Shown one piece after another: positions 33,934 through 63,980 of a stretch of 64,000 nucleotides of DNA. Position numbers and translations under genes: made by a program. The DNA is from Macrostomum lignano (Eukaryota). Each line of letters starts with the position of its first letter. The first letter of the stretch is position 1. Where the stretch lies: positions 62,001 through 126,000 of the forward strand of contig NIVC01001598.1 in the NCBI GenBank assembly GCA_002269645.1, written 5' to 3'. Under the pieces are notes generated by a model. The model did not search any database, was not told the DNA's origin, and saw only the letters and a program-made list of their open reading frames with translations.

Positions 33934-33974
33934 TAAAACATTTAGTCCTTTAATAAAACAAAACTTAGATTACT

Positions 33975-36420: not shown

Positions 36421-36454
36421 CGCTTGATAAGCTTGGCTACATGTATAGGATTAT

Positions 36455-37080
36455 TTCTATCCAGGGATGCTTGCTATTTAGGGATTCTTGCTATTTGCAG
36501 GATGCTTGCTATCTGGAAGGATGCTTCTACATTATTTGGGGGATGCTTGCTATCTGGAAGGATGCTTCTACATTATTTGGGGGATGCTTGCTATTTGGCT
36601 GGATGCTTTTATCCGGGAGATGCTTCTATTTGGGGGATGCTTGCTATCTACAAGATGCTTGCTATCTGCAGATGCTTGCTATCTGGGTGGATGCTTGCTA
36701 GGAGTATTAGGGGATGCTTGCTATCTGGGTAGATGCTTGCTAGGAGTATTAGGGGATGCTTGCTATCTGCGGTTGTTTACTTTTGGAGGAGGGTGCTTGC
36801 TACTGGGGGGATGCTTGCTGTCTTGGGAATATTTTCTATTTAGGGGTAATGACTGTGATCTTTGTGAAAGCTATATTTTGTTGTCTGTTTGTTAATTTTA
36901 GAAAAAAAGAGATTCATAGCAAATATCATTGTCCATGACAATTTTAAATGAATAAGGTGATTTTTAAAAGTGATGAAGGACTTGGTTTTTAAGAAAATGT
37001 GCTTTTTCATTGATTTCCATAAACTATTTTTGCTTCATTCTTATTGGGCGCCCCGAAGGGGGGCCGCACTAGATTGCTAG
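36455..37080 (+). mobile_element. Non-autonomous Helitron-like element, 3' portion, with internal GGGATGCTTGCTATCT repeats
   Basis: Ends CGCCCCGAAGGGGGG...ATTGCTAG|T; same family as 18455-18748. Confidence 0.6.
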
Positions 37081-38552: not shown

Positions 38553-39429
38553 GGCACGGGCGGGAAATACAGCAAATTTGAATGAAGTTTACAGAAGCCA
38601 AATGAGGCCGGGCCTTATCAGTGCCTGCTGCTATCGGCTGGAAAGAAGAACTCTCGTTTCAGTGTCTTTCTGCCGAAATGGTGCCTGCCGAGCCAAGCTC
38701 TACCTGTAGGCTCGGGGCCCAATTAATCAATTGGCTGAAGGCAGAGACTGAAAGGGAGGCAGAGAAATTCAAAGCAATTGCGAGCAAAGCAATTTCGCGT
38801 GAAAGCAGCAGCGTGTCTTCTGCGTTAACTCTGCCCGCTGCTTCGAGTCCGTTGGCTCTCTCTCTCTCCCGCCCCGGCAAAATTGTCTCCATGCTCAGCT
38901 TTTCTTCAACCCAATCTCTCTAGCAGCCTCACCGTGTCTCAAAATGCAGCCTCCTCAACTGAATTGAAACTGACAATTGCGACAGTCTGTGCGCGTCTCA
39001 CAGTGCTCAAACAGCTCACCTGCCCCGCTGCTCCAAGCCGATAACTGTTTGGATAGAAACAAGTTGCCGAACTAAAACTAGGATAGCTAAATAGTGTCTG
39101 GAAACATGATAAAAATATGTTTTTTTTGCTGTTTCACCTCAAGGACTTCTAATTAAAACACCTAAGAAAAACAAACACTCGCTGTTAATGTGCGCTCATA
39201 ACTTGCTGCCTAATCAATCTTATCTGGTCTCGGATAACAAACATATTGAGGAATTCGATTGGCAAAATTACCTGCTTTTGTCGCTTTTTTGCATCAGATG
39301 TGTGATTTGATGTTGCTCATCTGATACTGGTTACTGATGCTTACAAGTGTATAGCCAGGGTGGGAGCAAGGGGGTCCGTGCCCCCACCCTCTAATCGGCT
39401 GGCAAAAGAATATGGCGCCCCTGACGCTG

Positions 39430-39995
39430 GCGCCATTTCAACTGAAATGGCACTCGCTCAAGTGAAATGGTGCTCACGCAAGTGAAATGGCGCTCACTCA
39501 AGTGAACTCGCGCTCACTCAAGTTAAATGGTGCTCACGCAAGTGAAATGGCGCTCACTCAAGTGAACTCGCGCTCACTCAAGTTAAATGGTGCTCACGCA
39601 AGTGAAATGGCGCTCACTCAATTGATCAAGTTAAACGGCGCTTGCTCAAGTGAAATTTCGCTCACTCAAGTAAATGGCGCTTACTCAAGTGAAATGGTGC
39701 TCGCTTAAGTGAAATAATGCTCACTTAAGTGAAATGGCGCTCGCTCAAGTGAAATGGTGCTCACTCAAGTTAAACGGCGCTTGTTCAAGTGAAATGGCGC
39801 TCACTCAAGTGAACTCGCGCTCACTCAAGTTAAATGGTGCTCACGCAAGTGAAATGGCGCTCACTCAAGTGAAATGGCGCTCACTCAAGTTAAACGGCGC
39901 TTGGTCAAGTAAAATGGTGCTCACTCAAGTGAACTCGCGCTCACTCAAGTTAAATGGTGCTCACGCAAGTGAAAAGGCGCTCACTCGAGTGAAAT
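39430..39995. repeat. 20-bp minisatellite (TCAAGTGAAATGGCGCTCAC)
   Basis: Tandem units. Confidence 0.9.
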
Positions 39996-40229
39996 GGAGC
40001 CTATCCATTACTTTGTAAAATGATCATGAGAAACGCATATAAGTTCTATCTTATAAATATTTATTAGGAGCAAATTTCTTTTTATTCTTCCAAATGCTGA
40101 TCTGCATTCCTACTGTCATAAAATAATCATTAAATCACGTGACTAATGTACATAGAAATGAAATTCGATGCAAAAGTCGTCTGATCGCTATCGCCCTATC
40201 GCAACCCCAAGTTAAAAGAAACCAAGGCT

Positions 40230-47700: not shown

Positions 47701-48708
47701 CTACCGGAGTTGTGAGTATGTCACCTGCAGTGTTTTGGTTTATCCAATAAACAGCAATGCTAGACACAAAGATGCCATTTGTGGTAGTATATGGTAGAAA
47801 TAGAATGGAATAGCCTGGAATATCATAACTCTGAATAAGGCAGAAAGCCTATTGGTACAGCAAATAGCTCGGAAAACAAACCTCGGGACACAACGAACTT
47901 TGAAAGCGGTCCGGTCGGCACGCCGAATTCGTTTCTTTTGTCTGCTGAATGCACCGACGTCATCAGTTAGCGAGCCATGCGGCACCTGCGCCCAGACTTC
48001 CGAGTGAACTCTTCAAAACAGAACTTTGTCGCCAGGAAAGCCGTTGCGAAGTCCTTCAAGAAGCGTCTGGCTCCGGGAAAAGTTTTATTTTTGCCAGTGG
48101 TGCCGCTGGTTTTAAAGAGAAATTCGACTCTACCCGGGAAGAACACGTTTGGCTCGCCTCGGTAGGCCAGCTGGTTGTACTTGTCCAGCTCGGCATAGTC
48201 GCGAACCGGCACTCGAACTCGGAAATCCTCGATTCCACGGATCTCAGCGAACCCGTGATCGCGGCCGAAAACGGTTTTCCTGCTTCGTGCCACGTGCTTC
48301 ATGAGAGTGATGTGCTGCATCGCTAGCATCCTGCTGCCAGACCTGTACGCCCGCTTCAGGTTCCACACCGAGTACCTGCCTAGAGTAGCGGTGAGCAGCC
48401 GTGTCTTAGCCATCTGGATGAACCCATTCCAGCTCAGAGTGTTGCACGGCCTCATTTGACGCAAATACTGACAAGTCAGTGCGATCGAAGTGGCGGCACT
48501 GCAGATAATTCCTGAAACAAAACAAAATGTTTGTTTTAACGCGTTGTTTAACGCGTCAAGTTCAAGCAAGCTTCAGTCACAGCTTACCCAGAAAGCCGAG
48601 ACCGTATAGGGAGCACTGACTGGAGAGCAGAGCTGCAACTGCAGTGGCAATCAGGCCAACACATCCAGCCGAAATCAGGTTGAGAACGGTCGCGTACGAC
48701 TGAGCCAT
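44705..48708 (-). pseudogene. GH3-domain paralogue C with an in-frame TAA in exon 2; exons 48708-48588, 48511-47882, 47724-46992, 45241-45016, 44926-44705
   Basis: Same five-exon structure; TAA at 47969-47967 aligns with Leu in paralogue B and the frame continues after it (…NEFGVPTGPLSKF). Confidence 0.75.
45385..46400. repeat. Inverted repeat pair (~45385-45580 vs ~46020-46400) with a nested 48-bp-arm hairpin (46176-46378) in intron 3 of GH3 C
   Basis: Reverse-complement match read directly. Confidence 0.8.
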
Positions 48709-48935: not shown

Positions 48936-50400
48936 ATGGAATTGACAAACCGCGACTTTCGTGCCATGATGGTCGCTTACGACCAGCGAATAGATCTCCA
49001 CGCAGGAGAGTGCATTGATGTATCTGCGAGCTCCTTTCAGAGACCAAGCCCCATCACGTGCCAAAGTTTTTCGGTGGTACGGTGAGTGAAAGTGGGGCCG
49101 CAACAGCCTTGGATGCAGGACACCCAGCTTCTGCTGTCACCGACGAAAACATCGCTGCTGTCCGGAGAATGAGGACCGGTGAGTAACCTGTGCCGAGATC
49201 AGAGAGGCTCTCGGCTTTGGATCGGAAGCGGTTTACAACCACAACCTGAACGAAGACCAGAAGACGTAGGGGTGCGTTGATGAGGGTTCATACTCGAATT
49301 ATTGGACTATGGCACCTCAAAGCGATCCTGGGAGAATCACAGCTGATGAGACCTGAGTCTACCAGTACGACCTATTGACGCATCATGCATACTCCAATGG
49401 AGTACAGCTAGTGACGCATCCTGCATGTTCCAATGGAGTACAGCTAGTGACGCATCCTGCATGTTCCAATGGAGTACAGCTAGTGACGCATCCTGCATGT
49501 TCCAATGGAGTACAGCTAGTGACGCATCCTGCATGTTCCAATGGAGTCCATGCAGCTAGTGACGCATCCTGCATACCTCAATGGAATCCAGCTGGTGACG
49601 CATCCTGCAGGTTCCAATAGAGTCCAGCTGGTGACGCATCCTGCATACCCCAATGGAGTCTAGCTGGTGACGCATCCTGCATACCCCAATGGAGTCCAAC
49701 TGGTGACGCATTCTGCATGTTCCAATAGAGTCCAGCTGGTGACGCATCCTGCATACCCCAATAGAGTCCAGCTGGTGACGCATCCTGTATACCCCAATGG
49801 AGTCTAGCTGGTGACGCATCCTGCATACCCCAATGGAGTCCAGCTGGTGACGCATCCTGCATATTCCAATAGAGTCCAGCTGGTGACGCATCCTGCATAC
49901 CCCAATAGAGTCTAGCTAGTGACGCATCCTGCATACCCCAATGGAGTCCAGCTGGTGACGCATCCTGTATGTTCCAATAGAGTCCAGCTGGTGACGCATC
50001 CTGCATACCCCAATAGAGTCTAGCTAGTGACGCATCCTGCATACCCCAATGGAGTCCAGCTGGTGACGCATCCTGCATATTCCAATAGAGTTCAGCTGGT
50101 GACGCATCCTGCATACCCCAATAGAGTCTAGCTAGTGACGCATCCTGCATACCCCAATGGAGTCCAGCTGGTGACGCATCCTGTATGTTCCAATAGAGTC
50201 CAGCTGGTGACGCATCCTGCATACCCCAATGGAGTCTAGCTAGTAACGCATCCTGCATACCCCAATGGAGTCCAGCTGGTGACGCATCCTGTATGTTCCC
50301 CCCAACCTGACATACTGCAACTTCTTTCTCTTCACCTTGGGTGAAGAGTCAACTGCGTGGAAATCGAATTTAATTTGAAAGCAAATTCAGATTGAGCTAC
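48936..50400 (+). mobile_element. Degenerate mariner transposase relic
   Basis: MELTNRDFRAM…DQAPSRAKVFRWY…AVTDENIAAVRR…VTCAEIREALG (HTH region), RITADET*VYQYD, then LVTHP..SPNLTYCNFFLF.WVKSQLRG; multiple stops and frameshifts. Confidence 0.8.
49375..50300. repeat. 33-bp minisatellite (~28 copies) inside the mariner relic
   Basis: Unit GTCCAGCTGGTGACGCATCCTGCATACCCCAATGGA-like, in frame NGVQLVTHPAY. Confidence 0.95.
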
Positions 50401-51269
50401 AGTGCTCCTTTCGAGATGCGTGTCAACTATACTCGTTGAAAATTCTTTCAGCATACAACATAAATTTGAATAGTACAGCAACTTGCCTTTTTAATTATTG
50501 CAGTCAATCAAGTCGGTCTCTCAGGATTCAGTTAACTTCAAATTCAATTCACTCGACAGATGCGAGCTGGCCTACACACACCTACCACAGGGTTAACTAT
50601 TCGGTCACGAAGACTCATTCACGAGCTCGTCTGAAAAGCAGCTTTGGTCTTTAAGGGTTCTGTGTTATCGCTCTGCAGTCTGTCAATGTTGGCCAAACTA
50701 ACCAAACAAACTGCAGCAAAAGGCGTGGATTGGCAGTCGTTAGTTGATAAAATCTGATAGACCAAAAGGATTAAAAGTTAAAAATAATCTGTCCCTGCTT
50801 GCACTTAATCTTGAAGCCACGCAGCTGTTTGTCTGTCTGTCTGTCTGTCTGTCATGTGCTTCAGTCGCACCTACTTGACCTGTAAATGGCTGACAGCAGC
50901 CAAGAGAAACATAATAAATTTTTTTAAGAATACGAATAAGAATAAGAATTTAAGAATACCAAACTGTACAGTCAAAACAGTCTGGTAAAATTTCACAACT
51001 AGCCTAAGTACAGAACGGAGGGGGAGAGAGAATTATAGACACGCTCCACCCCATTGAAGCTGCGTATAAGAGCGATCTTATCTTACGATGGCTTTATAGA
51101 ACAAGGCCATGCATGTTAGTTCCCGCACTGGCTGCTGGGTGGCCTCATCCTTGAGGTGCGCTGTCCTTGGAGGAGAGCAGTAACCTTAAATTTCGGTGGG
51201 CAATAACCCTATTAAAATTATCATGCATCTTCCATACGAGTTACACTCTTACAATTTCACTCTGACACT

Positions 51270-51825
51270 ACTACGTATCGTGCAGATAAGTGTCGATTTT
51301 GGAGGTGAGGTGGGTGTCAGAGCCAATGCAAATTCAACGCCTATCTAAATACATTAGACCGATTCTAATTGGTCCAGAGTCATTATGTGAGACATTTATG
51401 CTCTCATGTAAAATCTATACATGTAATCAGTGTACACTGTATCGTACAGAAGCGACGACCAGTACAATAATTAACGCTCCGTCGTTGTTGTACGTAGAAG
51501 CGCCCCCACCCTGCAGCATTGGTGTACGCAGAATTAACTGTCCATATACCAAAAATTGGCAGAATTAACGCGCGCCGACCCACCCCATAACTGTCCATAT
51601 TATTACTTGTCCATATTTACTGTCCATCCCAAAATTGGTGTACGCACAGAATTGTAGCGTCCGCCCACCCCATAACTGTCTATATTATTACTTTTCCATA
51701 TTTACTGTCCATATATACACCCAAAATTGGTGTACGCACAGAATTGTCTGTGACCCCTACAAAATTGGCGCCCCCGCGCGCGGAGGCATGATGAGTCAGT
51801 CAGCCAGTAAATCGTCGCTGTCCAC
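51270..51825 (+). repeat. Left terminal inverted repeat
   Basis: First 200 bp match the reverse complement of 61221-61420 with 2 mismatches; inner part more diverged. Confidence 0.92.
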
Positions 51826-52432
51826 CCCTCTGCCCTGCGCTGGCCGCTATAGCTACCTGCAGCAGTGTTACGCAACAACCCGGTCGAGCCACAATGCTAA
51901 CTTTATAGCCAGACACGTCATCAAGGTCTGAAAACACAAACTTCTATGCATGAAATATTCTCGTTTTACAAGATGCCAAACCAACTTTGTTCAGACAGCA
52001 AACTATAAATAAGAAAATTTGGATTCTCGGCCGTTTATCTAAATTCACCAAGTTCAATTAACAATCCAATCATGTGGAAAACGCAGTGTTTGACAAGCAA
52101 TTTTTGGTTGCCAAAGCACAAGAGGATCAGACCGACAAAGCATGAACTGCCAACAACTTTGAGCAAGGATTTCAACACACCTCCAACGCCAGCACCGAAA
52201 ATAGGTACAAGTCTCATTTTTTCTGGAATCCTCGATAACGACAACACCGTAAAAAGCTCGTTAACATGTAATTAAAACAAAAACTTATTGAGACTCTCGG
52301 GTATATAAGCACCAGCCCGGAGCATCTGCAAGCACCCGTACCTGCAAATTTTTCTCGGATTCTCGGCAGTTTTTCAAGCTCGAATAACATCCCCACCACT
52401 AGTGCGAACAACGCAGCAGTGCTTGACAAGAA

Positions 52433-52852
52433 ATGAGCTGGATTTCCAGAGACTACCCCCTATTTTCGAACGAGGAAAAAGACGAATACGAGGCCTTGAA
52501 AATATCTGCTGACTGGTTGTGCATTTGCCACGGCAAACCGATTTCCGAGCGATTAGTCACCTTCAATGCCAAGGTCGAGGAAATTGATCAAGGCCCCTAC
52601 GACAGCCAAGACTACGCAGCAGCCAGGATAAATGAGCAACTACGGGACAAAATGAGATTCAAAGCTGATTTAGCACGAATGGAGAGATTACTGGCTCCGA
52701 TACTAAGTGAAGAGCATCGCCAAAAAATACGTTTTCGGAACCATCAAGATCTGTATAATCCGTCGTGGGAGGAGCAACAAAAGATTTGGAATTTTTGGCT
52801 GCCAAAGCACAAGAGGAACAGGCCGCCAAAGCTTGAACTACCATCAACTTGA
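52433..52852 (+). CDS. Element ORF of unknown function (139 aa); its C-terminus is paralogous to 52072-52275
   Basis: ATG-initiated ORF; shared NFWLPKHKR segment. Confidence 0.5.
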   Translation: MSWISRDYPLFSNEEKDEYEALKISADWLCICHGKPISERLVTFNAKVEEIDQGPYDSQDYAAARINEQLRDKMRFKADLARMERLLAPILSEEHRQKIRFRNHQDLYNPSWEEQQKIWNFWLPKHKRNRPPKLELPST

Positions 52853-53064
52853 AGCAAGGATTTCAGCACACCTCCAACGCCAGCACCCGAAAATAGGAAC
52901 AAAAGGTTCATTTTTTCCGGAATTCTCGATAACGACAACTCTGTAAAAAGCTCGTTATCGTGTGATTAAAACAAAAACTTATTGAGACTCTCGGGTATAT
53001 AAGCACCAGCCCGGAGCATCTGCAAGCGCCCGTACCTGCAAATTTTTCTAAACAGACAAGAGAC

Positions 53065-53775
53065 ATGGAGACAGTGCAAGACTTCAACTGCGTCAAGCGA
53101 GAGCTGCTGGCACTCAAACCGCGAGGTCCGAGCTTCAACGGGGTTGAAACGTTTGACATTGAATATGACGAACAGGGACCTCTCTACTTGGCCAATGCGG
53201 TCCCTGCTTTGATCGTCAAGGGCGTGCGTACTGACAACGAAGGTCGCGAATTCATCATCATTGCACAAAAACACATTGAAAGCTGCATACCCTACACTTT
53301 CAACACTGTGGCGGAGCACCTTTCCAGCGAAAGTCTAGCTCTGCTGGGCTACAACCCAGCGTTTGGAGGTGACAGTGCAGCGTTTGGGCTGGCTCACGAC
53401 TTTAAAATGTACGACCAAAACGGACTGCCTGTAGAGGATTACAAAAACAAGAGCGGCTACTACAGGATTCTGTTTACTCTCGACACGGCCGTGATTCGAG
53501 ACGCTGTTTTGACCGCAATGCCAAAAATTCAACAGCTACAGTTTGTCGAAGAAGCCAAACAGGCATTCGATCGTTGCTATTGGACGCCACCTCCAAAAAT
53601 CAAGGTAGGCGCCAAGAAAGTAAGCAAGAAAGCAAAGAAACCACCAAAGCTTGTCAAGGAGAAGCTGCCAAAGGTGCCTAAAAATCAGGCCAGAAAGCGA
53701 CAGCATCAATCGAAACTAGTAGCAGCCAACGAATCAAAGAAGCGGTCGAAAGCCCCAAGAAGGATACGAAAGTAA
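53065..53775 (+). CDS. Element ORF (236 aa), candidate OB-fold ssDNA-binding protein with a Lys-rich tail
   Basis: Clean ORF behind TATATAAG; beta-rich pattern loosely like viral gp2.5-type SSBs (by eye only). Confidence 0.45.
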   Translation: METVQDFNCVKRELLALKPRGPSFNGVETFDIEYDEQGPLYLANAVPALIVKGVRTDNEGREFIIIAQKHIESCIPYTFNTVAEHLSSESLALLGYNPAFGGDSAAFGLAHDFKMYDQNGLPVEDYKNKSGYYRILFTLDTAVIRDAVLTAMPKIQQLQFVEEAKQAFDRCYWTPPPKIKVGAKKVSKKAKKPPKLVKEKLPKVPKNQARKRQHQSKLVAANESKKRSKAPRRIRK

Positions 53776-53794
53776 AAACTGCCGAAAAATCTAC

Positions 53795-54274
53795 TTGCAG
53801 AACGTCGAGTGTGTGAACCGAGTGTTTTGCGCGAAATGGAGCCGCATGCCTGACTTGGACTGGGCGAGCGCACGGACATTTCGCAGACCAAGAGCTCTTA
53901 TCAATTTGCGAATAGGGAAATGTACAATCAACATTTTTCAGCGTTCTTTGTCTGCAATTGTATTCGGTTGTCGCTCCATCAACCAAGTTTTGCGTCTTTT
54001 TCCTCAATGTAAACCAATTTCTGTTGTTGTTACCACTAGTACTTACCGCGCTGAAGTAGACAGATGGCCAAACTTTTTCCAAATTGCATACTCCGGGTCC
54101 CGCTGGGTGAAGTGGGAGTGTGAAGTTTTCAATGGAATAGTAATAAAGTCTCCATTTCGCAATGCTAAATGTTTATTATGCGGAAAGAATGGCCGCCTTG
54201 TTTTCCTTGGAATACGAAACTTTAAAGAGCTCTGTCAAATGTACGATCATGTGACTAGCGTTTTGCATGTCTAA
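53795..54274 (+). CDS. Element ORF, candidate divergent TATA-binding-protein (TBP)-fold protein
   Basis: LQNV, TINIF…VFGCRS, WECEVFNGIVIK and NGRLVFLG…ELCQMYDHVTSVL are colinear with the TBP core; first in-frame ATG only at 53846. Confidence 0.55.
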   Translation: MQNVECVNRVFCAKWSRMPDLDWASARTFRRPRALINLRIGKCTINIFQRSLSAIVFGCRSINQVLRLFPQCKPISVVVTTSTYRAEVDRWPNFFQIAYSGSRWVKWECEVFNGIVIKSPFRNAKCLLCGKNGRLVFLGIRNFKELCQMYDHVTSVLHV

Positions 54275-54414
54275 TCCATGTAGCTGTTGCGTAACTTTAC
54301 TGCTTTACCACTGTACCGAATTTGTATGTACGTACAAGCTGCTATGAAATTGTCTATAAATATATTGTGCATAAATTGCAGTGCACTGCAACCAACATCT
54401 TTTTGCTAAACAAA

Positions 54415-54771
54415 ATGACAAACGGAATCTCCAGACTATGTTCTTGTCGCGGCGAGCTCGCAGAGCTCGCCAAAGCCCGTCCCACTCTTCGGCGGGCCAT
54501 TATTCGAGGTGCAGGCAAGGAACTGATTCATTGTCTCTGTGAATTGAGTCACAACGTGCTCCGGGGAAATATCGATCTTTCTCCGAAACAGTATCTACGA
54601 TTAAAGCGATACAGAAGATCGTTGCGTGAATTGGCAGACACAAAATTGTCTATAAATAGGAAGAAGAATATGCTTCTCTCGAATCCTCAAGTTGGTGGTT
54701 TTCTACCCATCCTTGCATCCGTTGCTGCACCGCTAATATCAAGCCTGTTTGGCGGACTACTTGGTCGCTAA
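54415..54771 (+). CDS. Conserved small Polinton protein with a C-terminal amphipathic helix (118 aa)
   Basis: CLCELSHNVLRGNIDL…QVGGFLPILASVAAPLISSLF pattern typical of Polinton/adintovirus ORFs. Confidence 0.7.
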   Translation: MTNGISRLCSCRGELAELAKARPTLRRAIIRGAGKELIHCLCELSHNVLRGNIDLSPKQYLRLKRYRRSLRELADTKLSINRKKNMLLSNPQVGGFLPILASVAAPLISSLFGGLLGR

Positions 54772-54772
54772 A

Positions 54773-55423
54773 ATGAATAAATACGTTGTTGTACCAGAAG
54801 AAGAATTTAATAGACTAAGTCAAGGCGCACCCCGAGAAATTGCATCCAAAACAGAATATGAAAAACTCATTGAATACAACACTCAACTCCAAAATAAACT
54901 AAGTCAGATCAAGCAAAAGAAGAGTAATCGTTTTCCTGAACGACAACAACGTGTTTGGGACATGCTGACAGAAAGATACCCAAATTTGGAGTACAACAAG
55001 TCGTGGGAAATTGTATTTGATGGAAAAACCTGGCCAGGAAGCAATATTTTCGATCTATTGAAGGAGATTACATCGAATGAAAGGCGCGACCGCCCAAGCC
55101 CAAAATATAGTACCGCTTTTTGGGCCCTGACCGAAGAGGTAGATATTGCAAAAGCTCTACAAGGACGACGCCAACAAGAAGAAGTCAGTGTGAAAAAAGA
55201 AGTCGGCACGGATCCGGATCGAGACGATTTTTTAGTCGAGCAAGCAATTGGAACTAATGATTTCTACAACGACTTCCACAAAGACCAAGCCAGTGGCCTG
55301 AATGAAATTAAAAAATATGAAGATCGTGGCAGCGATGCCTACAGGCATGCTTCATACCAACTTCGCGAACCAAAGAGGCGGCAGAAACCAGCAGTAAAAT
55401 ACGAGACGTTAAAAAAACTATAA
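54773..55423 (+). CDS. Conserved Polinton hypothetical protein (216 aa)
   Basis: KYVVVP start and WEIVFDGKTWPGSNIFDLL motif recalled from Polinton ORFs. Confidence 0.6.
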   Translation: MNKYVVVPEEEFNRLSQGAPREIASKTEYEKLIEYNTQLQNKLSQIKQKKSNRFPERQQRVWDMLTERYPNLEYNKSWEIVFDGKTWPGSNIFDLLKEITSNERRDRPSPKYSTAFWALTEEVDIAKALQGRRQQEEVSVKKEVGTDPDRDDFLVEQAIGTNDFYNDFHKDQASGLNEIKKYEDRGSDAYRHASYQLREPKRRQKPAVKYETLKKL

Positions 55424-55560
55424 ATAGAAATCATTTTCATGATTTATAATCTGTTTTTGGATCATGGGTGCCGCAGCTGTAACTTCAAAGCTTTGCTCAG
55501 ACAAACCGTCTGTGGAGTTCAAGTGTAATTACTCATGCTGTGCATCGAATCTAGTTGCGA

Positions 55561-56628
55561 ATGAGGGTGAAAACCGCTCTTCGGAGAGTGTACGAACAGG
55601 GGGACGCCGCTTTTACAAATGCTGCCCGTGTATATCAGGAGGCCAAACGGCTGGTCCCCTCCCTGACGAGACGCCAAACAGACGAATGGCTGAAGACCCA
55701 ATCGAGCTACACCCGGCACAAGAGGGTTAAAAGAAAATTCCAAACCGGAAAAGTAATGTCAGGAGGCTTCATGGAAACTGTGCAAGCGGATTTGATGGAC
55801 ATGTCACGATACGAACAATGGAATGATGGTCATCGATATATTCTAGTTGCAATTGACGTGCTTAGTAAATTGGCTTTTTGTCAGTCAATAAAATTGAAAA
55901 GCGACACTCCAAAGGCTTTTGAAAGCATGATCAAAGACTTCCCCATTAAGCCTTTATATCTACACGTTGATCGAGGTACCGAGTTTTATAACAATCGCAT
56001 GCAGAACTTACTGAAAGCCCATAATATCAAAATGTACAGTACAAACTCTGTATACAAGGCAAATATGGCTGAAAGGCTGATTAGGACTCTCCGAAAACGT
56101 TTAGCTCGCTACTTTGAGCATAAAAACACGTGGCGTTGGATCGACTATTTGCCAATATTGGTTAAAAGTTACAACAACACAGTACACTCTACTATTGATA
56201 TGAAACCTTCGAGTGTCGGTCTGCACAATCAAAAAGAATTGTGGGAAAAGCTCTACAAGGATCCTGAATATGATGAACCAGTTTACCAAAAAGGGGACTT
56301 TGTCAGAATTTCAAAATCTCGTCGAGCCTTTGACAAGGAAGCATACGATATGTACAGCGAAGAAGTTTACGTTGTGTCTCAAGTATGCCCGGGACCGCCT
56401 CATTTTTATCGCATTTCCGACCTATCTGGAGAACAAATCGAGGGTCGATTCTACTATAATGAACTTTCAAAGACGGTTCGACCGGACCGCTTTGTTATAG
56501 ACAAAATTCTGCGTCGCAATGTCATCATCAATGGTGTCGCTCATCATTTCGTTAGTTGGCGCGGCTATCCCGAGTCGTTCAATGCATTTGTACCAGTTGA
56601 GGAAGTTATAAATATAAGACAAGGATGA
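55561..56628 (+). CDS. Retroviral-type (rve) DDE integrase with C-terminal chromodomain-like region
   Basis: QADLMDM, IDVLSK, HVDRGTEF and KANMAERLIRTLR (D,D,E), plus IDKILRR…FVSWRGYPESFNAFVP; intact frame. Confidence 0.95.
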   Translation: MRVKTALRRVYEQGDAAFTNAARVYQEAKRLVPSLTRRQTDEWLKTQSSYTRHKRVKRKFQTGKVMSGGFMETVQADLMDMSRYEQWNDGHRYILVAIDVLSKLAFCQSIKLKSDTPKAFESMIKDFPIKPLYLHVDRGTEFYNNRMQNLLKAHNIKMYSTNSVYKANMAERLIRTLRKRLARYFEHKNTWRWIDYLPILVKSYNNTVHSTIDMKPSSVGLHNQKELWEKLYKDPEYDEPVYQKGDFVRISKSRRAFDKEAYDMYSEEVYVVSQVCPGPPHFYRISDLSGEQIEGRFYYNELSKTVRPDRFVIDKILRRNVIINGVAHHFVSWRGYPESFNAFVPVEEVINIRQG

Positions 56629-56662
56629 ACACACATACACTCGAAACGTGTAGTATATTACA

Positions 56663-57817
56663 ATGCATCTATTCCTACCTAGCAATGCGTGCGTTGAGCA
56701 CTATCCTGAGAATAATTCGGCACATTATAGCATTAATTTGCCCGACACCCTCCACTTTCCGAATCATGAAGTCTGCATCGAACGGATCTACTTTTGTAAA
56801 GAATTCAAAACCGTCCCCGATAATCGAATGGTTGATGTCCTGACCAACGCTCCCGAGGATGAAGTGATTGACATTGAGGTGAGAGAAAAACCCGCCTCCA
56901 CGTATAAACAGTTTGCGTCGGTTTCTCTCGCCGCGGGGCTATCAACAGCCAACGAAGTGGTTGATGCAATCATCGCCGATCTAAAATATGAGCAAGACGA
57001 TAATGCGATGATTTGCATTGAGCGTTCACAGGAAGGCCAAATTTCAATTGTGAACAAATCATGGTATGGTGCGAACATTAGGCTGTCCAGTAATGTGCGT
57101 AGCATGTTTAAAAAGGTTGATGACGCTGGAAATAAATCAAATATCGAAGTAACGACTTTTTTATTAAACCCAAGAAATTCGTTAGTATTCGCTATAGAAT
57201 TGGAGTCCTCCTCCTCCATAGAGAGTCCGATGACTCTAACGTTTGAAAAGAGTGTCTGGCCTTCTAGAACGTCACTGCGGATTGCTAAAGGATTCTACCG
57301 CACGCCTGACGAGCTCTTAAATTATGTTAATGGAGCGCTTTGGAGCGTCGTTTCAAAGCTCCCAATAAGTCCAGCGACGAGAGTGGATGCATTCCACTAC
57401 AACCCTTTTCTGAACCGGTGTGAGTACAAACCCATTGAAAACATTTTATTCGACATTGGAGAGCTTGCTGCCATTCTCGGCTTTCGCGAAGATGTTTTCA
57501 ATGAAACTCCAAAGACCGCTAAACGACCAATCGATTTAACAAATGGTGTACAAACTATGTACATCTATTCAAATATTGTCGACTCTGCCATTGTTGGAGA
57601 CGTCAAAGTCCCCCTGCTTGGGGCAATTCCTTTGAATGAAAAGGTATACGGCGAACGAGAGTACTACGAGTTTGTCAATCCATCCTACTTACCGTTGGTG
57701 AAACACCCATTCAAAACCATTGAGGTGCAAATCTGTGACGATATGGGCAAGTTAATGGATCGGATTCTTCGAGGCAAAACTGTTTTATCGATCAACATTC
57801 GTGAAATTAAGCTATAA
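56663..57817 (+). CDS. Polinton minor capsid (penton) protein (384 aa)
   Basis: LPSN..YPEN N-terminus; MYIYSNIV…VGDVKVPLL…F.NPSYLP…TIEVQI C-terminus. Confidence 0.8.
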   Translation: MHLFLPSNACVEHYPENNSAHYSINLPDTLHFPNHEVCIERIYFCKEFKTVPDNRMVDVLTNAPEDEVIDIEVREKPASTYKQFASVSLAAGLSTANEVVDAIIADLKYEQDDNAMICIERSQEGQISIVNKSWYGANIRLSSNVRSMFKKVDDAGNKSNIEVTTFLLNPRNSLVFAIELESSSSIESPMTLTFEKSVWPSRTSLRIAKGFYRTPDELLNYVNGALWSVVSKLPISPATRVDAFHYNPFLNRCEYKPIENILFDIGELAAILGFREDVFNETPKTAKRPIDLTNGVQTMYIYSNIVDSAIVGDVKVPLLGAIPLNEKVYGEREYYEFVNPSYLPLVKHPFKTIEVQICDDMGKLMDRILRGKTVLSINIREIKL

Positions 57818-57861
57818 ATAAAGAAGTTTTCACGAATAAAAGGTAGCAACTGATCGACAAT

Positions 57862-58203
57862 ATGCCTTCAATCTTGATCGGAGGAGCTTTACCGGTATTT
57901 TCCGGTGCACAGCGCGGCAACGGCCTGTTTGGCAGCATTGCCCGATTTGCCCTGCCAATTTTAAAGAGTTTTGGCAAAAATATTCTTCGCCACGGAACAC
58001 GAGCCCTAGCTACAACAGTTAGCGACACACTCGATCAAGGCGGGAACTTGAAAGAAGCGGCATTGCGTAACTCTGTCCAGGCAGCTAAAGATGCTTTCAA
58101 GGACACAGTCGCACAACGAGGTAGCGGCAGACAAAGACGAAGAAAGATGACTAACAAAAAACGAGAAAAAGACTGCAGCATTCTGATATTTTCGACTCTA
58201 TAA
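57862..58203 (+). CDS. Small basic amphipathic virion-type protein immediately upstream of the MCP (113 aa)
   Basis: QRGNGLFGSIARFALPILKSFGK helix, QRGSG motif, basic tail. Confidence 0.7.
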   Translation: MPSILIGGALPVFSGAQRGNGLFGSIARFALPILKSFGKNILRHGTRALATTVSDTLDQGGNLKEAALRNSVQAAKDAFKDTVAQRGSGRQRRRKMTNKKREKDCSILIFSTL

Positions 58204-58272
58204 ATAAAAAAACCCGTGCCAATAACTGATCTGTCTATTAGAGCACCACACTAAGCCGCTGTTGAAAGAAAA

Positions 58273-59554
58273 ATGACTGAGTGCCTGTGTACAAAGTCGG
58301 AATTCGAGCTTTTGCTCCTCGCGCACACCAAATTGCTGCAATTAGCGCCACCACTGAAGAAGTTCACCCTGTTGCCAGTGTTGAAAATGCCAGCGTGGTC
58401 GAATTTAGGATTGTTGGTGGTGAGACGTTTATCGATCTTAACGACATTGACCTCGAGATTAAGGCCCGCGTTAAGCAGTCTAATGGTACAAATCTTGCTG
58501 CTGATTCGAATGTTGCGCCGGTCAATTACGTCCTTGAAAGCATGTTTAAAAACGTCACGTTGACAATCAACGGGACACACGTAGAGTCGAGCAATAACAA
58601 CCACGCTTACAAGGCCTATATTCGCACGTGTTTGAATTACGGACACGATTCAAAAACCAATCAACTGAGAATGATGGGCTACGCAAAGGACGCTGGAGGT
58701 CAAATGGCTGTGGTTGGAAATCCTGGCTTTGTAGCCCGCAAGGCGATGGCGGCAAACTCACGCACCTTTCACCTTTATGGACCTCTTAGTTTAGACTTTT
58801 TTGTTACCAACGACCGAATGCTACTGCCATACACTGATATGGTAATTACGCTGACCATGCACAATTCCGGCTTCGTTCTGGAAAACCACGCGGACGGGGT
58901 TGATGCGCGGCTAGTACTCGAGAGTGCCAAACTACATGTGCGCCGCGTCAAGGCAAACCCCCAATTGGCATTGGAGATTGAAGAACAACTAGGCAAACAG
59001 AATGCAATCTATCCGATTGAGCGACTTGTTGTGCACAATACTTCAGTGGCTGGCGGTGTTCGGGACATGTCAATCAATAATATATTTCCTGAACAAAAGC
59101 CTAAACTAGTGGTTGTTGGCATGGTGAACAGCGGCGCATACAACGGTGTGGCTACACATAACCCGTTTAATTTTGAACCGTTTGGGCAGACAGTGTCGCT
59201 CTGTATAAGGACGGAGTCAGTCTGTGTGGACAACCGTTTACTCCTCGATTCGGTGTTCATAACTATGCTCGCGAGTATGCCATGCTACTAAAAAGCCTAG
59301 GAAAGATGAATCGGGACCTGGATATTGACGTATCATATTCCGACTATGGAGCTGGCTACTGCTTCTTCGCCTGGAATCTCATGCCCGACATGGAGCTGGG
59401 CGGGCATAGCATGCCTCGCGAGCGAGGGAATCTGACGCTACAAATAAAGTTTTCTGCTGCCTTGGCCGCAGGAATCAACGTGTTGGTGTTTGGCTACTTT
59501 GACAATACTGTGCAAATCACTCGCGGTCGTCAGGTTATTCTAGACTACGTGTAG
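58273..59554 (+). CDS. Double jelly-roll major capsid protein (~427 aa once two 1-nt frameshifts are repaired)
   Basis: CLCTKSEFEL start, FIDLNDI, HNPFNF, VALYKDG, LTLQIKF; shifts at the T-run 58310-58313 and near GGG 59184-59186. Confidence 0.85.
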
Positions 59555-59604
59555 AAACAAACATCTCTTTTTTATTCTCGAATAACGACCATATTCATGC
59601 CGAT

Positions 59605-60029
59605 ATGAATAGTCTAGATATATTAGAACGTCTAATACTACCTGTCCCTGTTCGAGTAACACCAGTTGACAGGATTCCGCAGCCTGTTTATCCTGCTGCA
59701 ATCTACCAGGCACTCACTGGGCTTTAATTTGTCTTCATGCCGATGAGAGCGTGACATTTTTTGACCCCTTGTGTATCGATCCTGTGCCAGATTTATTAAA
59801 GTTGTGGATCGCAAAGTATGTCCCTGTGGAGGTGGCCATGAACCGGCATCCTGTACAGCATCCGCTGAGTGTGACCTGCGGGGCTCATGTAATATTTGTG
59901 GCTGAAAAACACTTTCTGGAGGGTCTGTCAATTGAAAAAATATTGCGCGACTGTTATAGCACAAATCTTTACGAGAACGACTTGATGGTGCAGAATCACT
60001 GTCTACAAATAAAGCAGCATCATCCATAA
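59605..60029 (+). pseudogene. Adenain-like cysteine protease, frame-disrupted near 59700
   Basis: MNSLDI…PVDRIP…PAAI in one frame; PGTHW…FFDP…QHPLSVTCG (His/Asp/Gln/Cys) in another. Confidence 0.8.
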
Positions 60030-60031
60030 AT

Positions 60032-60682
60032 ATGATTGGGCGGCCTATCAAAATGTATCAAACAATAGACCCCGATTCTTTAAAATTTGCCCCCAAAACG
60101 TCGGCAATTTTTGCTGGGGTGGCTCAAAGCGGCAAGACCACACTTGTGAAAAACCTATTGAGACAAGAATTTTTTCAAGATCCGAAGCCGATTCGCGTTG
60201 ACTGGTTTGGCCACTATCCGGATCCTGAACTGTTTGAATTGCCGTACCCTGTAAATTTTCGTTCGTGTACATTTGATCCTGAACAATATGTCCCTGAACC
60301 AAATATTCTGCTTGTCGTCGACGACCAAATGCATGTCATGGAAAAGAGTGGCGCTTTTACAACTTTTTTCACGCGCAAAGTCTCCCACGTGGGGTTCCGA
60401 CTTTGGTATCTTGTGCAAAACCTGTTTGCAAAGGGTAAGGAGCACCGAACTCAGTCGCTCAATTCTAACTACCTTGTTTTATTCCGCAATGTACGGGATG
60501 CCAGCACAGTGTCTCATATTGCAAGGCAGCTGGTCCCCACTAATCCAAAAAGTTTTGTCAAAACGTATGAGGATGCTACTCGCGACCCCTACTCATACTT
60601 GATTGTAAACTGTTTGCAAAATGCTCCTGCTCGCTATTATTCAAACGTTTTGGGTCGTCACCCAATTGTGTATGCTAAATAA
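60032..60682 (+). CDS. FtsK/A32-like genome-packaging ATPase (216 aa)
   Basis: Walker A GVAQSGKTT, Walker B LLVVDD, LVQNLF, NSNYLVLFRN. Confidence 0.92.
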   Translation: MIGRPIKMYQTIDPDSLKFAPKTSAIFAGVAQSGKTTLVKNLLRQEFFQDPKPIRVDWFGHYPDPELFELPYPVNFRSCTFDPEQYVPEPNILLVVDDQMHVMEKSGAFTTFFTRKVSHVGFRLWYLVQNLFAKGKEHRTQSLNSNYLVLFRNVRDASTVSHIARQLVPTNPKSFVKTYEDATRDPYSYLIVNCLQNAPARYYSNVLGRHPIVYAK

Positions 60683-60840
60683 ATATACGTATCAAAGCTC
60701 GGCTGGCTTTTTGTGTAAATATATATACGCCTTTTGAAAACTTATTTGGGAGAGGGGTTGGTGGATGACGTAATTGTCTCGGAGTGTCGACGAGGGCTGA
60801 ATTCTAGAGAATGAAGTATGGAAGGAGTGGATATAACAGT

Positions 60841-61420
60841 GTGGATAGCGGCGATTTACAGCGGCTGACTCATCATGCCTCCGCGCGCGGGGGGCGCCAA
60901 TTTTGTAGGGGTCACAGACAATTCTGTGCGTACATCAATTTTGGGTGTATATATGGACAAGTAATAATATGGACAGTTATGGGGTGGGCGGACGCTACAA
61001 TTCTGCGCGTACACCAATTTTGGGATGGACAGTAAATATGGACAAGTAATAATATGGACAGTTATGGGGTGAGTGGGCGCTCTAATTCTGCCAATTTTTG
61101 GTATATGGACAGTTAATATGGACAGTTAATTCTGCGTACACCAATGCTGCATTGTGTGGGGATGGGGGCGCGCGCGTTTCTATACGTACAACAACGGTGA
61201 AGCGCTAATTATGCGTACTATATTGTACTAGTCGTCGCTTCTGTACGATACAGTGTACACTGATTACATGTATAGATTTTACATGAGAGTATAAATGTCT
61301 CACATAATGACTCTGGACCAATTAGAATCGGTCTAATGTATTTAGATAGGCGTTGAATTTGCATTGGCTCTGACACCCACCTCACCTCCAAAATCGACAC
61401 TTATCTGCACGATACGTAGT
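60841..61420 (-). repeat. Right terminal inverted repeat
   Basis: Reverse complement of the left TIR. Confidence 0.92.
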
Positions 61421-61729
61421 GACACTGTCACTCTTACACAATTACACACACGCTGTCAGTGACACTTTAGTAAGTCACAAACCCTAGATTCACAGATACA
61501 AACACAATCTTCACTAATCTTTATAGCTTTCAGATAAATAGATTCACAGGTCCTTAATTTACAGATTTTTATGACCAATTTACCATGTTCAAGCTGGTCA
61601 ACAGCACCATAAGCCGTTTGGCTGCCTTCAGAGATACATTACCGATAGCATAAAATTGTACTTACTGAGTGACGTCATTGCATGCGACCCAATTTCGACA
61701 TGCGCTTGTGCTTCATAGCACCAGAGAGA

Positions 61730-62005
61730 CCCATTAAGGTGTGGCATATCACCAGAGGACTCATTATGGTGTGTCATATCACTACAGGACTCATTAAGGT
61801 GTCATATCACCCGAGGACTCATTAAGGTGTGTCATATCACTAGAGGACTCATTAAGGTGTCATATCACCCGAGGACTCATTAAGGTGTGTCATGTCACCA
61901 GAGGACTCATTGAAGTGTGTCATATCACTAGAGGGCTCAATAAGGTGTGTCATATCACCCGAGGACTCATTAAGGTGTGTCATATCACCAGAGGACTCAT
62001 TAAGA
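61730..62005. repeat. ~30-bp minisatellite (GTGTCATATCACCAGAGGACTCATTAAGGT)
   Basis: Tandem units. Confidence 0.9.
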
Positions 62006-62696
62006 TGGTGTTAAGAACGTCAGCTTCATTAATGAACAAACAAATTTACAGGCAACTATCATTACACCTTACGCTCGCATGTAAGCGGTGAAAGCTCAAG
62101 TAAGCATTCAATCAGTAGCTCAGCTGACAGCTGAACAAATTTGCATTATATTTGCGGTGGGCCGTGAACACTGATATAATACTGAGCTAAGTAGCCGTGA
62201 GCGCGAACTCTCAAGCACAATTTCGCGAACTCGTTTAAGCAGGTTGCCGCGGCAAAAAAAGCAGAATGAATCTTTTTCAAAAAGCAACAAAATGGCAACT
62301 GATGCGAGAGGCCAAGCATCCCAGACCAGGGCGGTAGATTGTCGGGTGTGGCACAGACGTTCTTGGGCTGATAACATTCTGATTGGGGCTGGTAACATTC
62401 TTATCCGGCAACATGCGATCTGGATCTTAGAAATAGATTTACAGGGACAAAATAGACACAATTTTGATAGATTTGTAATTTATGCAAAAATGCGAAATTA
62501 ATATTGCAACAGCGAGTGCAAAGGTGAACAATGCAAGGTGATGTGGCGATCAATAAATTGCAATTGCAAAACTAAAAAAGTCTGCATTCCAAGCTTCGTT
62601 GTGACAATTTTGCTTTAAAATTTGTAATAGAGAATATACAAAGGCTTGCAGTGCTTAGCGAGAAGGCACAAAATTAAAAGAAAAAACCACCTGTCA

Positions 62697-63105
<409 letters not shown>

Positions 63106-63429
63106 CTGCTTGTCTGCATGTCAATACGGTCGTATTCAAAATACGAGCTACAATTAAAATCGCATTAAAAAGGCCAGCAAAATTTACCTAATTAACTAAT
63201 TCGCTGTTACAGAGAAGCGAGAAACTCTTGCAGTGCTACTGGCAGTAGCGCAACACGGTGAAGCAAATTATAAAGTAAATAATAAAAAGCAATAATTGCC
63301 TCGTTACCGCCGAGCGGACTAATTAAGTCAGACTGCGCATCTCTTATTTCTGTTGGTTTTAAATATTCTTTACGTTTCCCAACTGACTTGCGTTATTAAA
63401 GAGCGCTTCAAAATTGACGCTGTTCACAG

Positions 63430-63980
63430 ACCATTGATTCACAGATAATCGATTCACAGATCCTCGATTCACAGATTCTAAATTCAAAGATTCTCAATTC
63501 ACAGATTTTAAGTTCACAGATCATCGATTCACAGATTCCAGATTCACAGACCCCAGATCCCAAATTCACAGATCCCAGATTCACAGATCCTAGATTCACA
63601 GATCCCAAATTCACAGATCCCAAATTCACAGATCCCAGATTCACAGATCCTAGATTCACAGATCCCAAATTCACAGATCCCAGATTCACAGATCCTAGAT
63701 TCACAGATCCTAGATTCACAGATTCCAGATTCACAGACCCAGATCCCAAATTCACAGATCCCAGATTCACAGATCCTAGATTCACAGATTCCAGATTCAC
63801 AGACCCCAGATCCCAGATTCACAGATCCCAGATTTACAGATATTAGATTTACAGATATTAGATTCACAGATCCCAGATTCACAGATCCCAGATTCACAGA
63901 TCTTAGATTCACAGATCCCAAATTCACAGATCCGAGATTCACAGATCCCAGATTCACAGATCCCAGATTCACAGATTCTA
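63430..63980. repeat. 15-bp minisatellite (AGATTCACAGATCCC)
   Basis: Tandem units. Confidence 0.95.

Follow-up and report, generated by a model that had tools for sequence, protein, structure and literature searches.

Polintons are defined by having their own polymerase, and Polinton-like viruses (Aquintoviricetes) have a double jelly-roll (DJR) capsid module and helicase-primase-type replicases, usually without an rve integrase or adenain. In the pPolB2 class of Polintons the polymerase contains an HNH insert (Jeong et al. 2023, PMC10748475), and adintovirus accessory genes typically adjoin PolB (PMC8502044). Mobile polintons that lack polB have been reported from Pieris mannii beside near-identical siblings that retain it; the loss coincides with LINE/LTR cargo insertions, and several copies are still active (Pannagram preprint, bioRxiv 10.1101/2025.02.07.637071). 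Group 2 Maverick-Polintons and MELD viruses have no recognisable PolB and use a substitute replicase, in which a polymerase or primase is joined to an SF1 or SF3 helicase (10.64898/2026.06.19.733378; Buck et al. 2024).

A lineage that encodes a capsid and an integrase but no replicase would, if true, change the view of how Polintons propagate, and the polymerase-free claim made in an earlier, sequence-only reading of this locus therefore deserved a test. Positions 51270-61420 of the window (the whole 64-kb stretch of DNA analysed) hold a genuine, cleanly bounded, 10-kb integrated Polinton/adintovirus-like virus, and that reading was right in identifying it as such, with complete ends and no PolB. 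It most likely belongs to this known kind and is new as a member. The preference for a polymerase-free lineage was not supported and the claim is mostly deflated, because the capsid family encodes a protein-primed PolB, which is terminal in two other branches, and because the copy itself looks deleted, with a putative scar, and decaying, with two virion genes frameshifted.

In the relatives that represent the pPolB2 class (L023/L025 and L024), the protein-primed PolB contains every Exo and Pol motif plus an Endonuclease_7/HNH insert, and an rve integrase, a DJR capsid protein, a protease and an ATPase are encoded as well. The window element has their whole non-polymerase gene set in common, but no polymerase at all. 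Genomes of this family are compact, with 12.3 kb for the complete one as against the usual 15-20 kb. With adintoviruses (Starrett et al. 2021, PMC8502044; Buck et al. 2024, bioRxiv 10.1101/2024.03.25.586562) the element shares an animal association, an rve integrase (with a chromodomain-like region), the hexon/adenain/PacK module with a penton candidate, and putative small membrane-active-type proteins, and its relatives add Bcl-2-type anti-apoptotic accessory genes, TBP-like genes and duplicate pentons (L020), whereas the window lacks the OTU-PolB by which adintoviruses are defined. The polintons of Pieris mannii are likewise bounded by TIRs, keep the integrase and virion genes, miss polB and raise the question of mobilisation; the window element, however, has no cargo, was seen in one copy and has two frameshifted virion genes. 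Adenovirus-type virion genes without a recognisable PolB are also common to the element and the group 2 Maverick-Polintons and MELD viruses, but no substitute replicase was seen in the window, nor any frame long enough for one.

The complete ends, with both TIRs and an exact 6-bp target-site duplication (TSD), were confirmed (Table 1); long TIRs and a 6-bp TSD are features of Polinton/Maverick elements (Polintoviricetes). The outer 200 nt of the TIRs are 99% complementary (51270-51469 versus 61221-61420), and the alignment of the full arms, which contains 56 gapped columns and 12 mismatches, gives 97.7% identity over the positions aligned. Apart from the two ends of the element, the window contains no copy of the terminal 36-mer (chance expectation 0), and the 9-mer TGTCCATAT has ten copies in the TIRs and none elsewhere. 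A search with the TIR terminus retrieved no further copy from the rest of the 64-kb window and no match from IMG/VR. Insertion of the element by the rve integrase would have left the 6-bp duplication.

Table 1. Coordinates of the features in and around the element, in window positions.
Feature	Position	Strand	Remarks
Left target-site duplication, GACACT	51264..51269		Read directly; same hexamer at 61421-61426
Left TIR, 530 nt, with 85-nt subrepeats and four TGTCCATAT motifs	51270..51799	+	
Partial duplicate (last ~20 codons of the 139-aa gene plus downstream spacer, no 5' gene body)	52099..52355	+	
139-aa conserved protein, WLCIC..KP motif	52433..52852	+	Homologues 108 aa (L020) and 114 aa (L021)
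236-aa conserved protein, basic C-terminal tail	53065..53775	+	Homologue inside UniRef A0A1I8G3E6
TBP-like ORF, single TATA-binding-protein domain	53795..54274	+	Frame from 53723; first ATG 53846
Small conserved virion-accessory-type protein, Gly-rich hydrophobic C-terminus	54322..54771	+	Conserved from ~ATG 54415
224-aa ORF, probable ATG 54773	54749..55423	+	Conserved in close relatives only
rve integrase, C-terminal chromodomain-like region, probable ATG 55561	55555..56628	+	Uninterrupted
384-aa penton (minor capsid) candidate	56663..57817	+	Uninterrupted; conserved family upstream of capsid gene
113-aa small conserved protein, putative membrane-active or core protein	57862..58203	+	Between penton candidate and capsid gene
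Double jelly-roll major capsid protein gene, two frameshifts	58273..59554	+	Intact homologues 427 aa
Adenain-like cysteine protease gene, one frameshift	59555..60029	+	5' bound approximate; intact homologues 148-157 aa
IVa2/A32-like packaging ATPase, Walker A GVAQSGKT, Walker B LLVVDD	60032..60682	+	Uninterrupted
Right TIR, 556 nt, with six TGTCCATAT motifs	60865..61420	-	
Right target-site duplication, GACACT	61421..61426		Matches left copy

The integrase had been described as intact, and its unbroken frame and a Pfam rve score of 34.5 bits (cut-off 32.6) agree with this, an rve integrase being a further Polinton/Maverick feature. Its Chromo score of 13.8 bits is under the cut-off of 25.1; homologous integrases in L005, L024 and L025 pass both profiles. 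The integrase of L020 is 70% identical to that of the window.

The virion module, on the other hand, is not as complete as had been claimed, since comparison with intact homologues showed that the frame switches twice in the capsid gene and once in the protease gene, all other genes (9 of 11) being uninterrupted. The capsid gene is that of a DJR major capsid protein, as expected of a Polinton/Maverick: the AlphaFold model of an intact homologue (P0002, 75% identical; pLDDT 89, pTM 0.87) matched the capsid proteins of PBCV-1 (Vp54), Sputnik and mavirus in Foldseek with E values of 1e-15 to 3e-19, the best of these (3e-19) being to Vp54. The best match to the capsid protein in the viral library was a Maverick-type protein from a Cotesia sesamiae bracovirus record (27% identity), and at the fold level a protein of 'Adintovirus sp.' ranked 16. 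By homology to the proteases of L005 and L024, which score 21.7 and 21.6 bits against Pfam Peptidase_C5 (cut-off 21.3), the adenain-like protease of Polinton/Maverick elements is present too. The ATPase of L024 passes both Pfam Adeno_IVa2 and Pfam Pox_A32, and the window protein, which is 38% identical to it (E 2e-30) and has Walker A and B motifs, is identified by this as an A32/IVa2 (FtsK-HerA) packaging ATPase, again a Polinton/Maverick feature; on its own, the window ATPase has generic P-loop matches only. The 384-aa protein, for which there is a tandem duplicate in L020, may be the single jelly-roll penton expected of a Polinton/Maverick, judging by its position; it gave no PDB profile match and no hhalign link to the capsid protein. 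The two amphipathic proteins proposed earlier are plausible, but they are not distinctive by hydrophobic moment. The three frameshifts could be assembly errors.

No polymerase, primase or helicase was found in any reading frame of the element, as the earlier reading had also stated. The longest stop-to-stop frame is 387 aa, assigned genes cover 85% of the interior, and they leave gaps of at most 633 nt. A PolB from the same capsid family, searched against the whole 64-kb window, found nothing (best E 0.48). PolB, which is a membership feature of Polinton/Maverick (Polintoviricetes), is present in L023/L025 and L024 and missing from the window. Both TIRs and the TSD are kept while the polymerase is missing, as in a non-autonomous Polinton. 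Assignment to the Polinton-like viruses (Aquintoviricetes) was also considered and rejected, given the rve integrase, the adenain-like protease and the lack of a helicase or primase.

The polymerases of the capsid family are known from two of its branches. L024, an IMG/VR UViG, is a complete genome of 12,321 nt with TIRs at 1-135 and 12187-12321, in which a 1164-aa PolB is followed by the ATPase, a small protein, the integrase, the penton, a small protein, the capsid protein and the protease. The 13.9-kb contig L025 runs from the integrase through the capsid protein to TBP, KilA-N and a terminal PolB of 1463 aa. Both PolBs are protein-primed terminal genes and, set side by side with the phi29 polymerase, show motifs Exo I-III and Pol A-C in the canonical order. 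The Endonuclease_7/HNH insert lies between Exo I and Exo II in both family PolBs (L023/L025 and L024), and the PolB of L023 has N-terminal C2H2 zinc fingers. The ancestral state of the family includes PolB.

The closest relatives of the window element, L020 and L021, are 60-85% identical to it at the amino acid level, with the same synteny and the whole left module in common. The 'tidy' left 2.3 kb had been taken to favour a distinct lineage, but the same module is present in these two relatives, which carry extra genes: outside the leftmost gene of the window copy they continue with CARD or Bcl-2 and then Fic, all of which the window copy lacks. Next to its left TIR the window copy has a partial duplicate, a direct repeat of 52790-53049 (~260 nt, 88-93% identical) with no counterpart in L020 or L021 and specific to the window copy, which we read as a putative rearrangement scar. 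The TBP-like ORF gave no Pfam match itself; it aligns with 98% of L021:3069-3446 at 62% identity, and that homologue exceeds the Pfam TBP cut-off (24.6 versus 22.9 bits). The small Gly-rich protein is found family-wide, usually adjoining the ATPase, and the 224-aa ORF has a 192-aa homologue in L020. The closest named homologue of the 236-aa protein is embedded in a Macrostomum lignano entry (Table 1). The partial duplicate could also be a harmless duplication.

The window element has probably arisen by deletion from a compact Polinton of the pPolB2 type. The parent would have been a Polinton/adintovirus-like virus of compact size (~12-16 kb) with an animal as its host, probably a Macrostomum-type flatworm, and with TIR ends and genes for a chromodomain rve integrase, a TBP-like factor, a penton candidate, small proteins, a DJR capsid protein, adenain and an IVa2/A32 ATPase, along with host-interaction genes (Fic, Bcl-2 or CARD) and an HNH-bearing pPolB2 protein-primed family-B polymerase adjacent to a terminus. 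Since no sibling with the same TIRs plus a PolB was seen, we infer this parent, in which PolB would have lain beyond Fic. The left terminal-proximal block of polymerase, Fic and Bcl-2/CARD would have been lost with both TIRs kept, a loss presumably confined to this copy or its immediate ancestors and not shared by the subclade as a whole. Decay since insertion would account for the three frameshifts, which fall in two virion genes, and for the TIR divergence of 2.3%; the uninterrupted state of 9 of the 11 genes and the TIR identity argue that the copy is not an old wreck. Without a polymerase it could not copy itself, so for any spread a full-length relative present in the same cell would have to supply the polymerase, and by now also the capsid protein and protease. 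The sequence-only reading had likewise offered a defective virus that depends on the polymerase of a helper, and this is the better reading.

It is possible, though unlikely, that the element forms a subclade without PolB together with L020, L021, L006, L007 and perhaps L005 (an incomplete contig in which no PolB was found), a subclade that keeps the integrase, a complete virion module and host-manipulation genes. Its members would be satellites of a PolB-encoding Polinton or use host replication while integrated, the window copy being slightly eroded. This reading keeps standing because the contigs of the closest relatives stop at or just past Fic; if L020 and L021 ended at a TIR there, the subclade would be PolB-free. 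The contigs of L021, L006 and L007 do end 31-233 nt from a terminal gene, as at a TIR boundary, and short-read assemblers often break near such boundaries. However, L020 ends within Fic and not at a gene boundary, and no TIR-like similarity links the contig ends with one another or with the TIRs of the window element. No signal of a PolB, primase or helicase was obtained from contigs of the subclade, L001 (8.9 kb) or the L014 branch (L014 and L016, ~12.4 kb), but none of these is complete, and the only complete genome of the capsid family (L024) carries PolB. The ends of the window copy are perfect and most of its genes are open, yet it lacks the Fic and Bcl-2/CARD genes of both relatives and is thus not a faithful representative of them. 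Replication modules are exchangeable in group 2 Maverick-Polintons (bioRxiv 10.64898/2026.06.19.733378), in line with this reading.

We think it quite improbable that the element is autonomous, with the 139-, 236- or 224-aa protein of the left module acting as an unrecognised initiator that brings in host polymerases for replication, in the manner of small DNA tumour viruses. The three proteins are conserved and have no assignable function, the 236-aa protein ends in a basic tail of DNA-binding-like character, and the ten 9-mers in the TIRs could be putative binding sites. Nevertheless, none of the three gave a motif or family match of the NTPase, HUH, primase or helicase type, and to our knowledge all are below the size of known initiator-helicases. 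The AlphaFold model of the 236-aa protein is unusable (pLDDT 38.5) and the initiator reading is not supported; moreover, a PolB-bearing family member also carries the conserved 149-aa-type small protein (118 aa in L024). An assembly collapse between repeats that removed part of a longer insertion is very improbable: the window is extremely repeat-rich, the left region holds the ~260-nt direct repeat and the frameshifts hint at imperfect consensus quality, but the assembly retains the two copies of the repeat and the unique gene that separates them, the TIR/TSD geometry is exact, and a collapse would need near-identical repeats flanking the missing block, whereas these copies differ by 7-12%.

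As a probable deletion derivative, the element is one more clean, exact-ended polB-less Polinton insertion and bears on how such copies enter genomes. It would be an endogenous representative, in what is probably a flatworm genome, of a compact (12-14 kb) pPolB2/HNH-type Polinton family, the members of which carry TBP, Fic, Bcl-2, CARD, SH2 or KilA-N genes. The closest relatives of the element were seen in four independent public datasets.

The Polinton/adintovirus-like element is a discrete insertion at window positions 51270-61420. Its outer 200 nt are 99% complementary between both ends, and the full terminal inverted repeats (TIRs), with arms of 530 nt on the left and 556 nt on the right, are 97.7% identical over aligned positions; their alignment holds 12 mismatches and 56 gapped columns, the indels falling in 85-nt subrepeats. 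The hexamer GACACT on either side constitutes a 6-bp target-site duplication (TSD), confirming both the TIRs and the exact TSD proposed in the sequence-only reading. Within the window, the terminal 36-mer was found nowhere but at the element's two ends, and both flanks are CA/CT-rich simple sequence of one kind, as insertion into a single site would predict. The TIR terminus was not found in a scan of IMG/VR. The 9-mer TGTCCATAT has ten copies in the window against 0.42 expected by chance, four in the left TIR and six in the right, all inside 85-nt and 13-16-nt subrepeats; these could be protein-binding sites serving the origin, packaging or integrase.

All genes of the element lie on the plus strand and tile 85% of its interior. 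The integrase scored above the Pfam cut-off for rve and, when gene breaks were scored against intact close homologues, was uninterrupted, as had been claimed; its chromodomain is sub-threshold in Pfam, and those of the homologous integrases on the metagenomic contigs L005, L024 and L025 are above threshold. Because the capsid gene of the window is interrupted, we modelled an intact homologue, P0002 (75% identical), together with 13 relatives in its stead. The model (pLDDT 89, pTM 0.87) is a double jelly roll (DJR) that in a structure search matched the capsid proteins of PBCV-1 (Vp54), SGIV, Sputnik and mavirus. The closest match of the capsid protein in the viral library is a protein from a Cotesia sesamiae bracovirus record (27% identity, E 1e-28), and since bracoviruses are known captors of Mavericks, this places it with the animal Maverick/Polintons. 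The protease is homologous to proteins above the Pfam Peptidase_C5 cut-off, and the ATPase has Walker A and B motifs and is 38% identical to that of L024, which passes Pfam Adeno_IVa2 and Pox_A32. Upstream of the capsid gene is a penton candidate of 384 aa that belongs to a conserved family; its profile matched neither PDB sequences nor the capsid profile. Two small proteins of 113 and 149 aa are conserved throughout the family. An exact look-up of the penton candidate and ATPase proteins found neither on record. The close relative L020 has two tandem penton-candidate paralogues of 347 and 437 aa against one in the window, resembling the duplicate pentons reported in adintoviruses.

The capsid gene contains two frame switches and the protease gene one, the remaining nine genes being uninterrupted, so that the virion module is not intact as assembled in this single assembly. 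The "full virion module" described earlier stands for the identity of the capsid protein, protease and ATPase and fails for the integrity of the genes of the first two; the penton is a candidate by its position.

The absence of a polymerase (PolB) from the element, also noted from the sequence, is solid. We searched the interior by gene tiling, by tblastn with a family PolB and with motif regexes. The longest stop-to-stop frame is 387 aa and the largest stretch lacking an assigned gene is 633 nt. A PolB from the same capsid family gave no tblastn match in the 64-kb window (best E 0.48), and the PolB motif regexes were absent from all six frames save for a single match, attributable to chance, to the least stringent of them.

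Other branches of the family do carry a PolB. Long contigs hold members of a capsid-protein cluster with about 32% identity to the window protein. In L023 and L025 (13.9 kb) the gene order is ATPase, small ORFs, chromodomain integrase, 360 aa, 111 aa, a 398-aa ORF and capsid protein, followed on the opposite strand by TBP, 132 aa, KilA-N and a 1463-aa protein at the contig end; the 398-aa ORF, at the penton position, had no sequence match to the window penton candidate. The IMG/VR genome L024 (12,321 nt) has TIRs at both ends. Its left TIR adjoins a 1164-aa homologue of the 1463-aa protein (28% identical over about 1200 aa, E 1e-126), after which come ATPase, a small protein, integrase, penton, a small protein, capsid protein and protease. 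IMG/VR scans with the L023 capsid protein and the ATPase profile returned L024 alone, and those with the capsid profile, the capsid protein of the distant relative L014, the window integrase and the L023 PolB gave no matches.

The sole Pfam matches of the 1164- and 1463-aa proteins are to zinc fingers and an Endonuclease_7/HNH domain. Both conserve six PolB motifs in canonical order, aligned with phi29 polymerase: Exo I DxE, Exo II HNxxxYD, Exo III YxxxD, Pol A DxNNLYG, Pol B KxxNSxYGK and Pol C DTDS. As Pfam, PDB-sequence searches, phage tblastn and hhalign against phi29 all failed to recognise these proteins as PolB, their identification rests on the ordered motifs, size, conservation between homologues only 28% identical, the HNH insert and the terminal position. 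An HNH insert in divergent Polinton PolB is a hallmark of the pPolB2 class (PMC10748475), and Starrett et al. described one divergent PolB class that is missed by pfam03175 (PMC8502044). Besides the HNH insert, the L023 and L025 proteins have an N-terminal block of C2H2 zinc fingers that spans roughly residues 1-240; the shorter L024 protein is without this block. With PolB in L023, L025 and the complete L024, the ground plan of the family is a compact Polinton with a terminal pPolB. In the distant relatives L014 and L004, conserved-looking ORFs of 519 and 646 aa had no Pfam or PDB match and could encode fibre-like virion proteins or unrecognised replication proteins.

Relatives of the capsid protein were found solely in metagenomes and read-set assemblies, the closest in Logan SRR23617227, SRR23592405 and SRR19430222 and in ENA ERZ27315222. 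These relatives are fragments, and the host genome was seen over 64 kb. The close relatives (60-85% amino acid identity) cover the penton candidate through ATPase (L006, L007), the left module through the capsid gene (L020, 8.8 kb) and the left module (L021), and keep the synteny of the window gene for gene, the whole left module included. Outside the homologue of the 139-aa gene, L020 has a CARD and a Fic gene and L021 a Bcl-2 (Pfam 73.8 bits) and a Fic gene; both contigs terminate at Fic. The window has no CARD, Bcl-2 or Fic gene. At that place are about 300 nt of unassigned sequence and then a 257-nt partial duplicate of the 3' end of the 139-aa gene and its downstream spacer (88-93% identical), which was looked for in L020 and L021 and is in neither.

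Most economically, the window copy would descend from a PolB-encoding virus of the same family through loss of a terminal-proximal left block (PolB, Fic, Bcl-2/CARD), with both TIRs retained. This reading is favoured because PolB is present in two other branches, including one complete genome, because both closest relatives have additional outer genes, and because the window copy bears a local rearrangement scar, the partial duplicate, and further frameshifts. In addition, adintovirus accessory genes typically sit beside PolB, and mobile polB-lacking polintons coexist with polB-bearing siblings in Pieris. The tidy left 2.3 kb had been taken to favour a polymerase-free lineage, an argument that is not supported, as L020 and L021 share the left module yet carry additional outer genes. 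Should Fic abut the TIR in L020 and L021, the subclade of the window element and its closest relatives would be PolB-free and the bolder lineage reading would revive; we consider this unlikely. Comparison of the contig ends of the relatives with the window TIRs and with each other gave chance 10-12-mers only, and a leftward walk from the Fic gene yielded no viral continuation, its sole non-self match being a cellular Macrostomum lignano Fic gene. The latter was rejected as viral flank, being intron-bearing and without viral neighbours. It is also the best cellular match of the viral Fic (39% identical), which suggests capture of the viral gene from a flatworm-like host. Host-interaction genes in the relatives comprise Fic/DOC, CARD, Bcl-2, SH2 and KilA-N.

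A cryptic small replication initiator might also hide among the unassigned proteins of the element. Besides a TBP-like ORF, the left module encodes proteins of 139, 236 and 224 aa, the 236-aa one with a basic tail; searches gave no assignable function for these three, and a structure of the 236-aa protein from 7 homologues was unusable (pLDDT 38.5). We regard such an initiator as very improbable. That an assembly collapse removed PolB is the least probable explanation of all.

When the profile of the 236-aa family was searched exhaustively with HMMER, the close relatives and one M. lignano protein were the only genuine matches; the others were rejected as tandem-repeat artefacts with spurious Pfam matches. 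This nearest named homologue (UniRef A0A1I8G3E6, 435 aa, annotated "PGA_cap domain-containing protein") holds a close homologue of the 236-aa protein with an internal duplication, and its gene model probably spans an endogenous viral copy. Together with the best cellular match of the viral Fic, likewise from M. lignano, this entry makes a Macrostomum-type flatworm the probable host. The window ORF is predicted to be TBP-like through a homologue that passes Pfam TBP. TATA-binding-protein-like genes recur in the virus family, with Pfam scores up to 71.8 bits (L014). The frames of the window and L020 both run into the 3' end of the upstream 236-aa gene, and in L020 it was not called as a gene.

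Functionally the element resembles Polintons and adintoviruses, and its descent places it among them. It shares with Polintons the rve integrase, TIRs and 6-bp TSD, DJR capsid protein, adenain and packaging ATPase, but lacks the defining polymerase and is therefore strictly a non-autonomous derivative rather than a Polinton sensu stricto. Nor is it a PLV, since it encodes adenain and an rve integrase while a helicase-primase is absent. Polinton copies without PolB, and Polintons whose replicase has been exchanged, have been described before; the modest additions here are a compact pPolB2/HNH family with TBP, Fic, Bcl-2, CARD, SH2 or KilA-N genes, and the occurrence of this family in a probable flatworm genome.

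Coordinates of features in the window and on contigs of viral relatives
Sequence	Feature	Positions (strand)
Window	Minisatellite-rich stretches	1900-10600, 28900-36500, 39400-40000, 49376-50299, 61713-62004, 62691-63976
Window	7tm_1 GPCR exon	8880-9656
Window	GH3-domain gene copies/fragments (GH3 N-terminal and middle domain)	12683-14453 (+), 41982-43634 (-), 46988-47767 (-)
Window	PDEase fragment	15524-16210
Window	Tandem units	19525-27963 (-)
Window	TIR arms	51270-51799, 60865-61420
Window	Copies of the 9-mer	51539-51714, 60951-61124
Window	Partial duplicate	52099-52355
Window	Sequence copied in the partial duplicate	52790-53049
Window	TBP-like gene	53795-54274
L001	Host-interaction gene	8433-8861 (-)
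L004	646-aa ORF	1056-2996
L014	TBP-like gene	6980-7681 (-)
L014	519-aa ORF	9657-11213
L020	Host-interaction genes	3-620 (-), 785-1081
L020	Penton-candidate paralogues	5000-6043, 6015-7328
L021	Host-interaction genes	48-866 (-), 1079-1579 (-)
L021	TBP-like gene	3069-3446
L023	TBP-like gene	2936-3454 (-)
L023	Host-interaction gene	4148-5107 (-)
L023	PolB	5351-9736 (-)
L025	TBP-like gene	6819-7337 (-)
L025	PolB	9234-13625 (-)

The remainder of the window is animal DNA, with a rhodopsin-type GPCR, a PDEase fragment and several copies of a GH3-domain gene, whose presence on both strands suggests that a host gene was duplicated locally. Scanning the window for Rfam families and tRNAs gave no matches. 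Three units in tandem, spaced about 3.47 kb apart, each contain a 496-aa ORF that has no Pfam match, and the GC and AT skew of these stretches is extreme. Minisatellites are very dense, with periods of 15-65 nt and lengths up to 2.5 kb, and just downstream of the element lies a (CTGT)n array with about 100 repeats.
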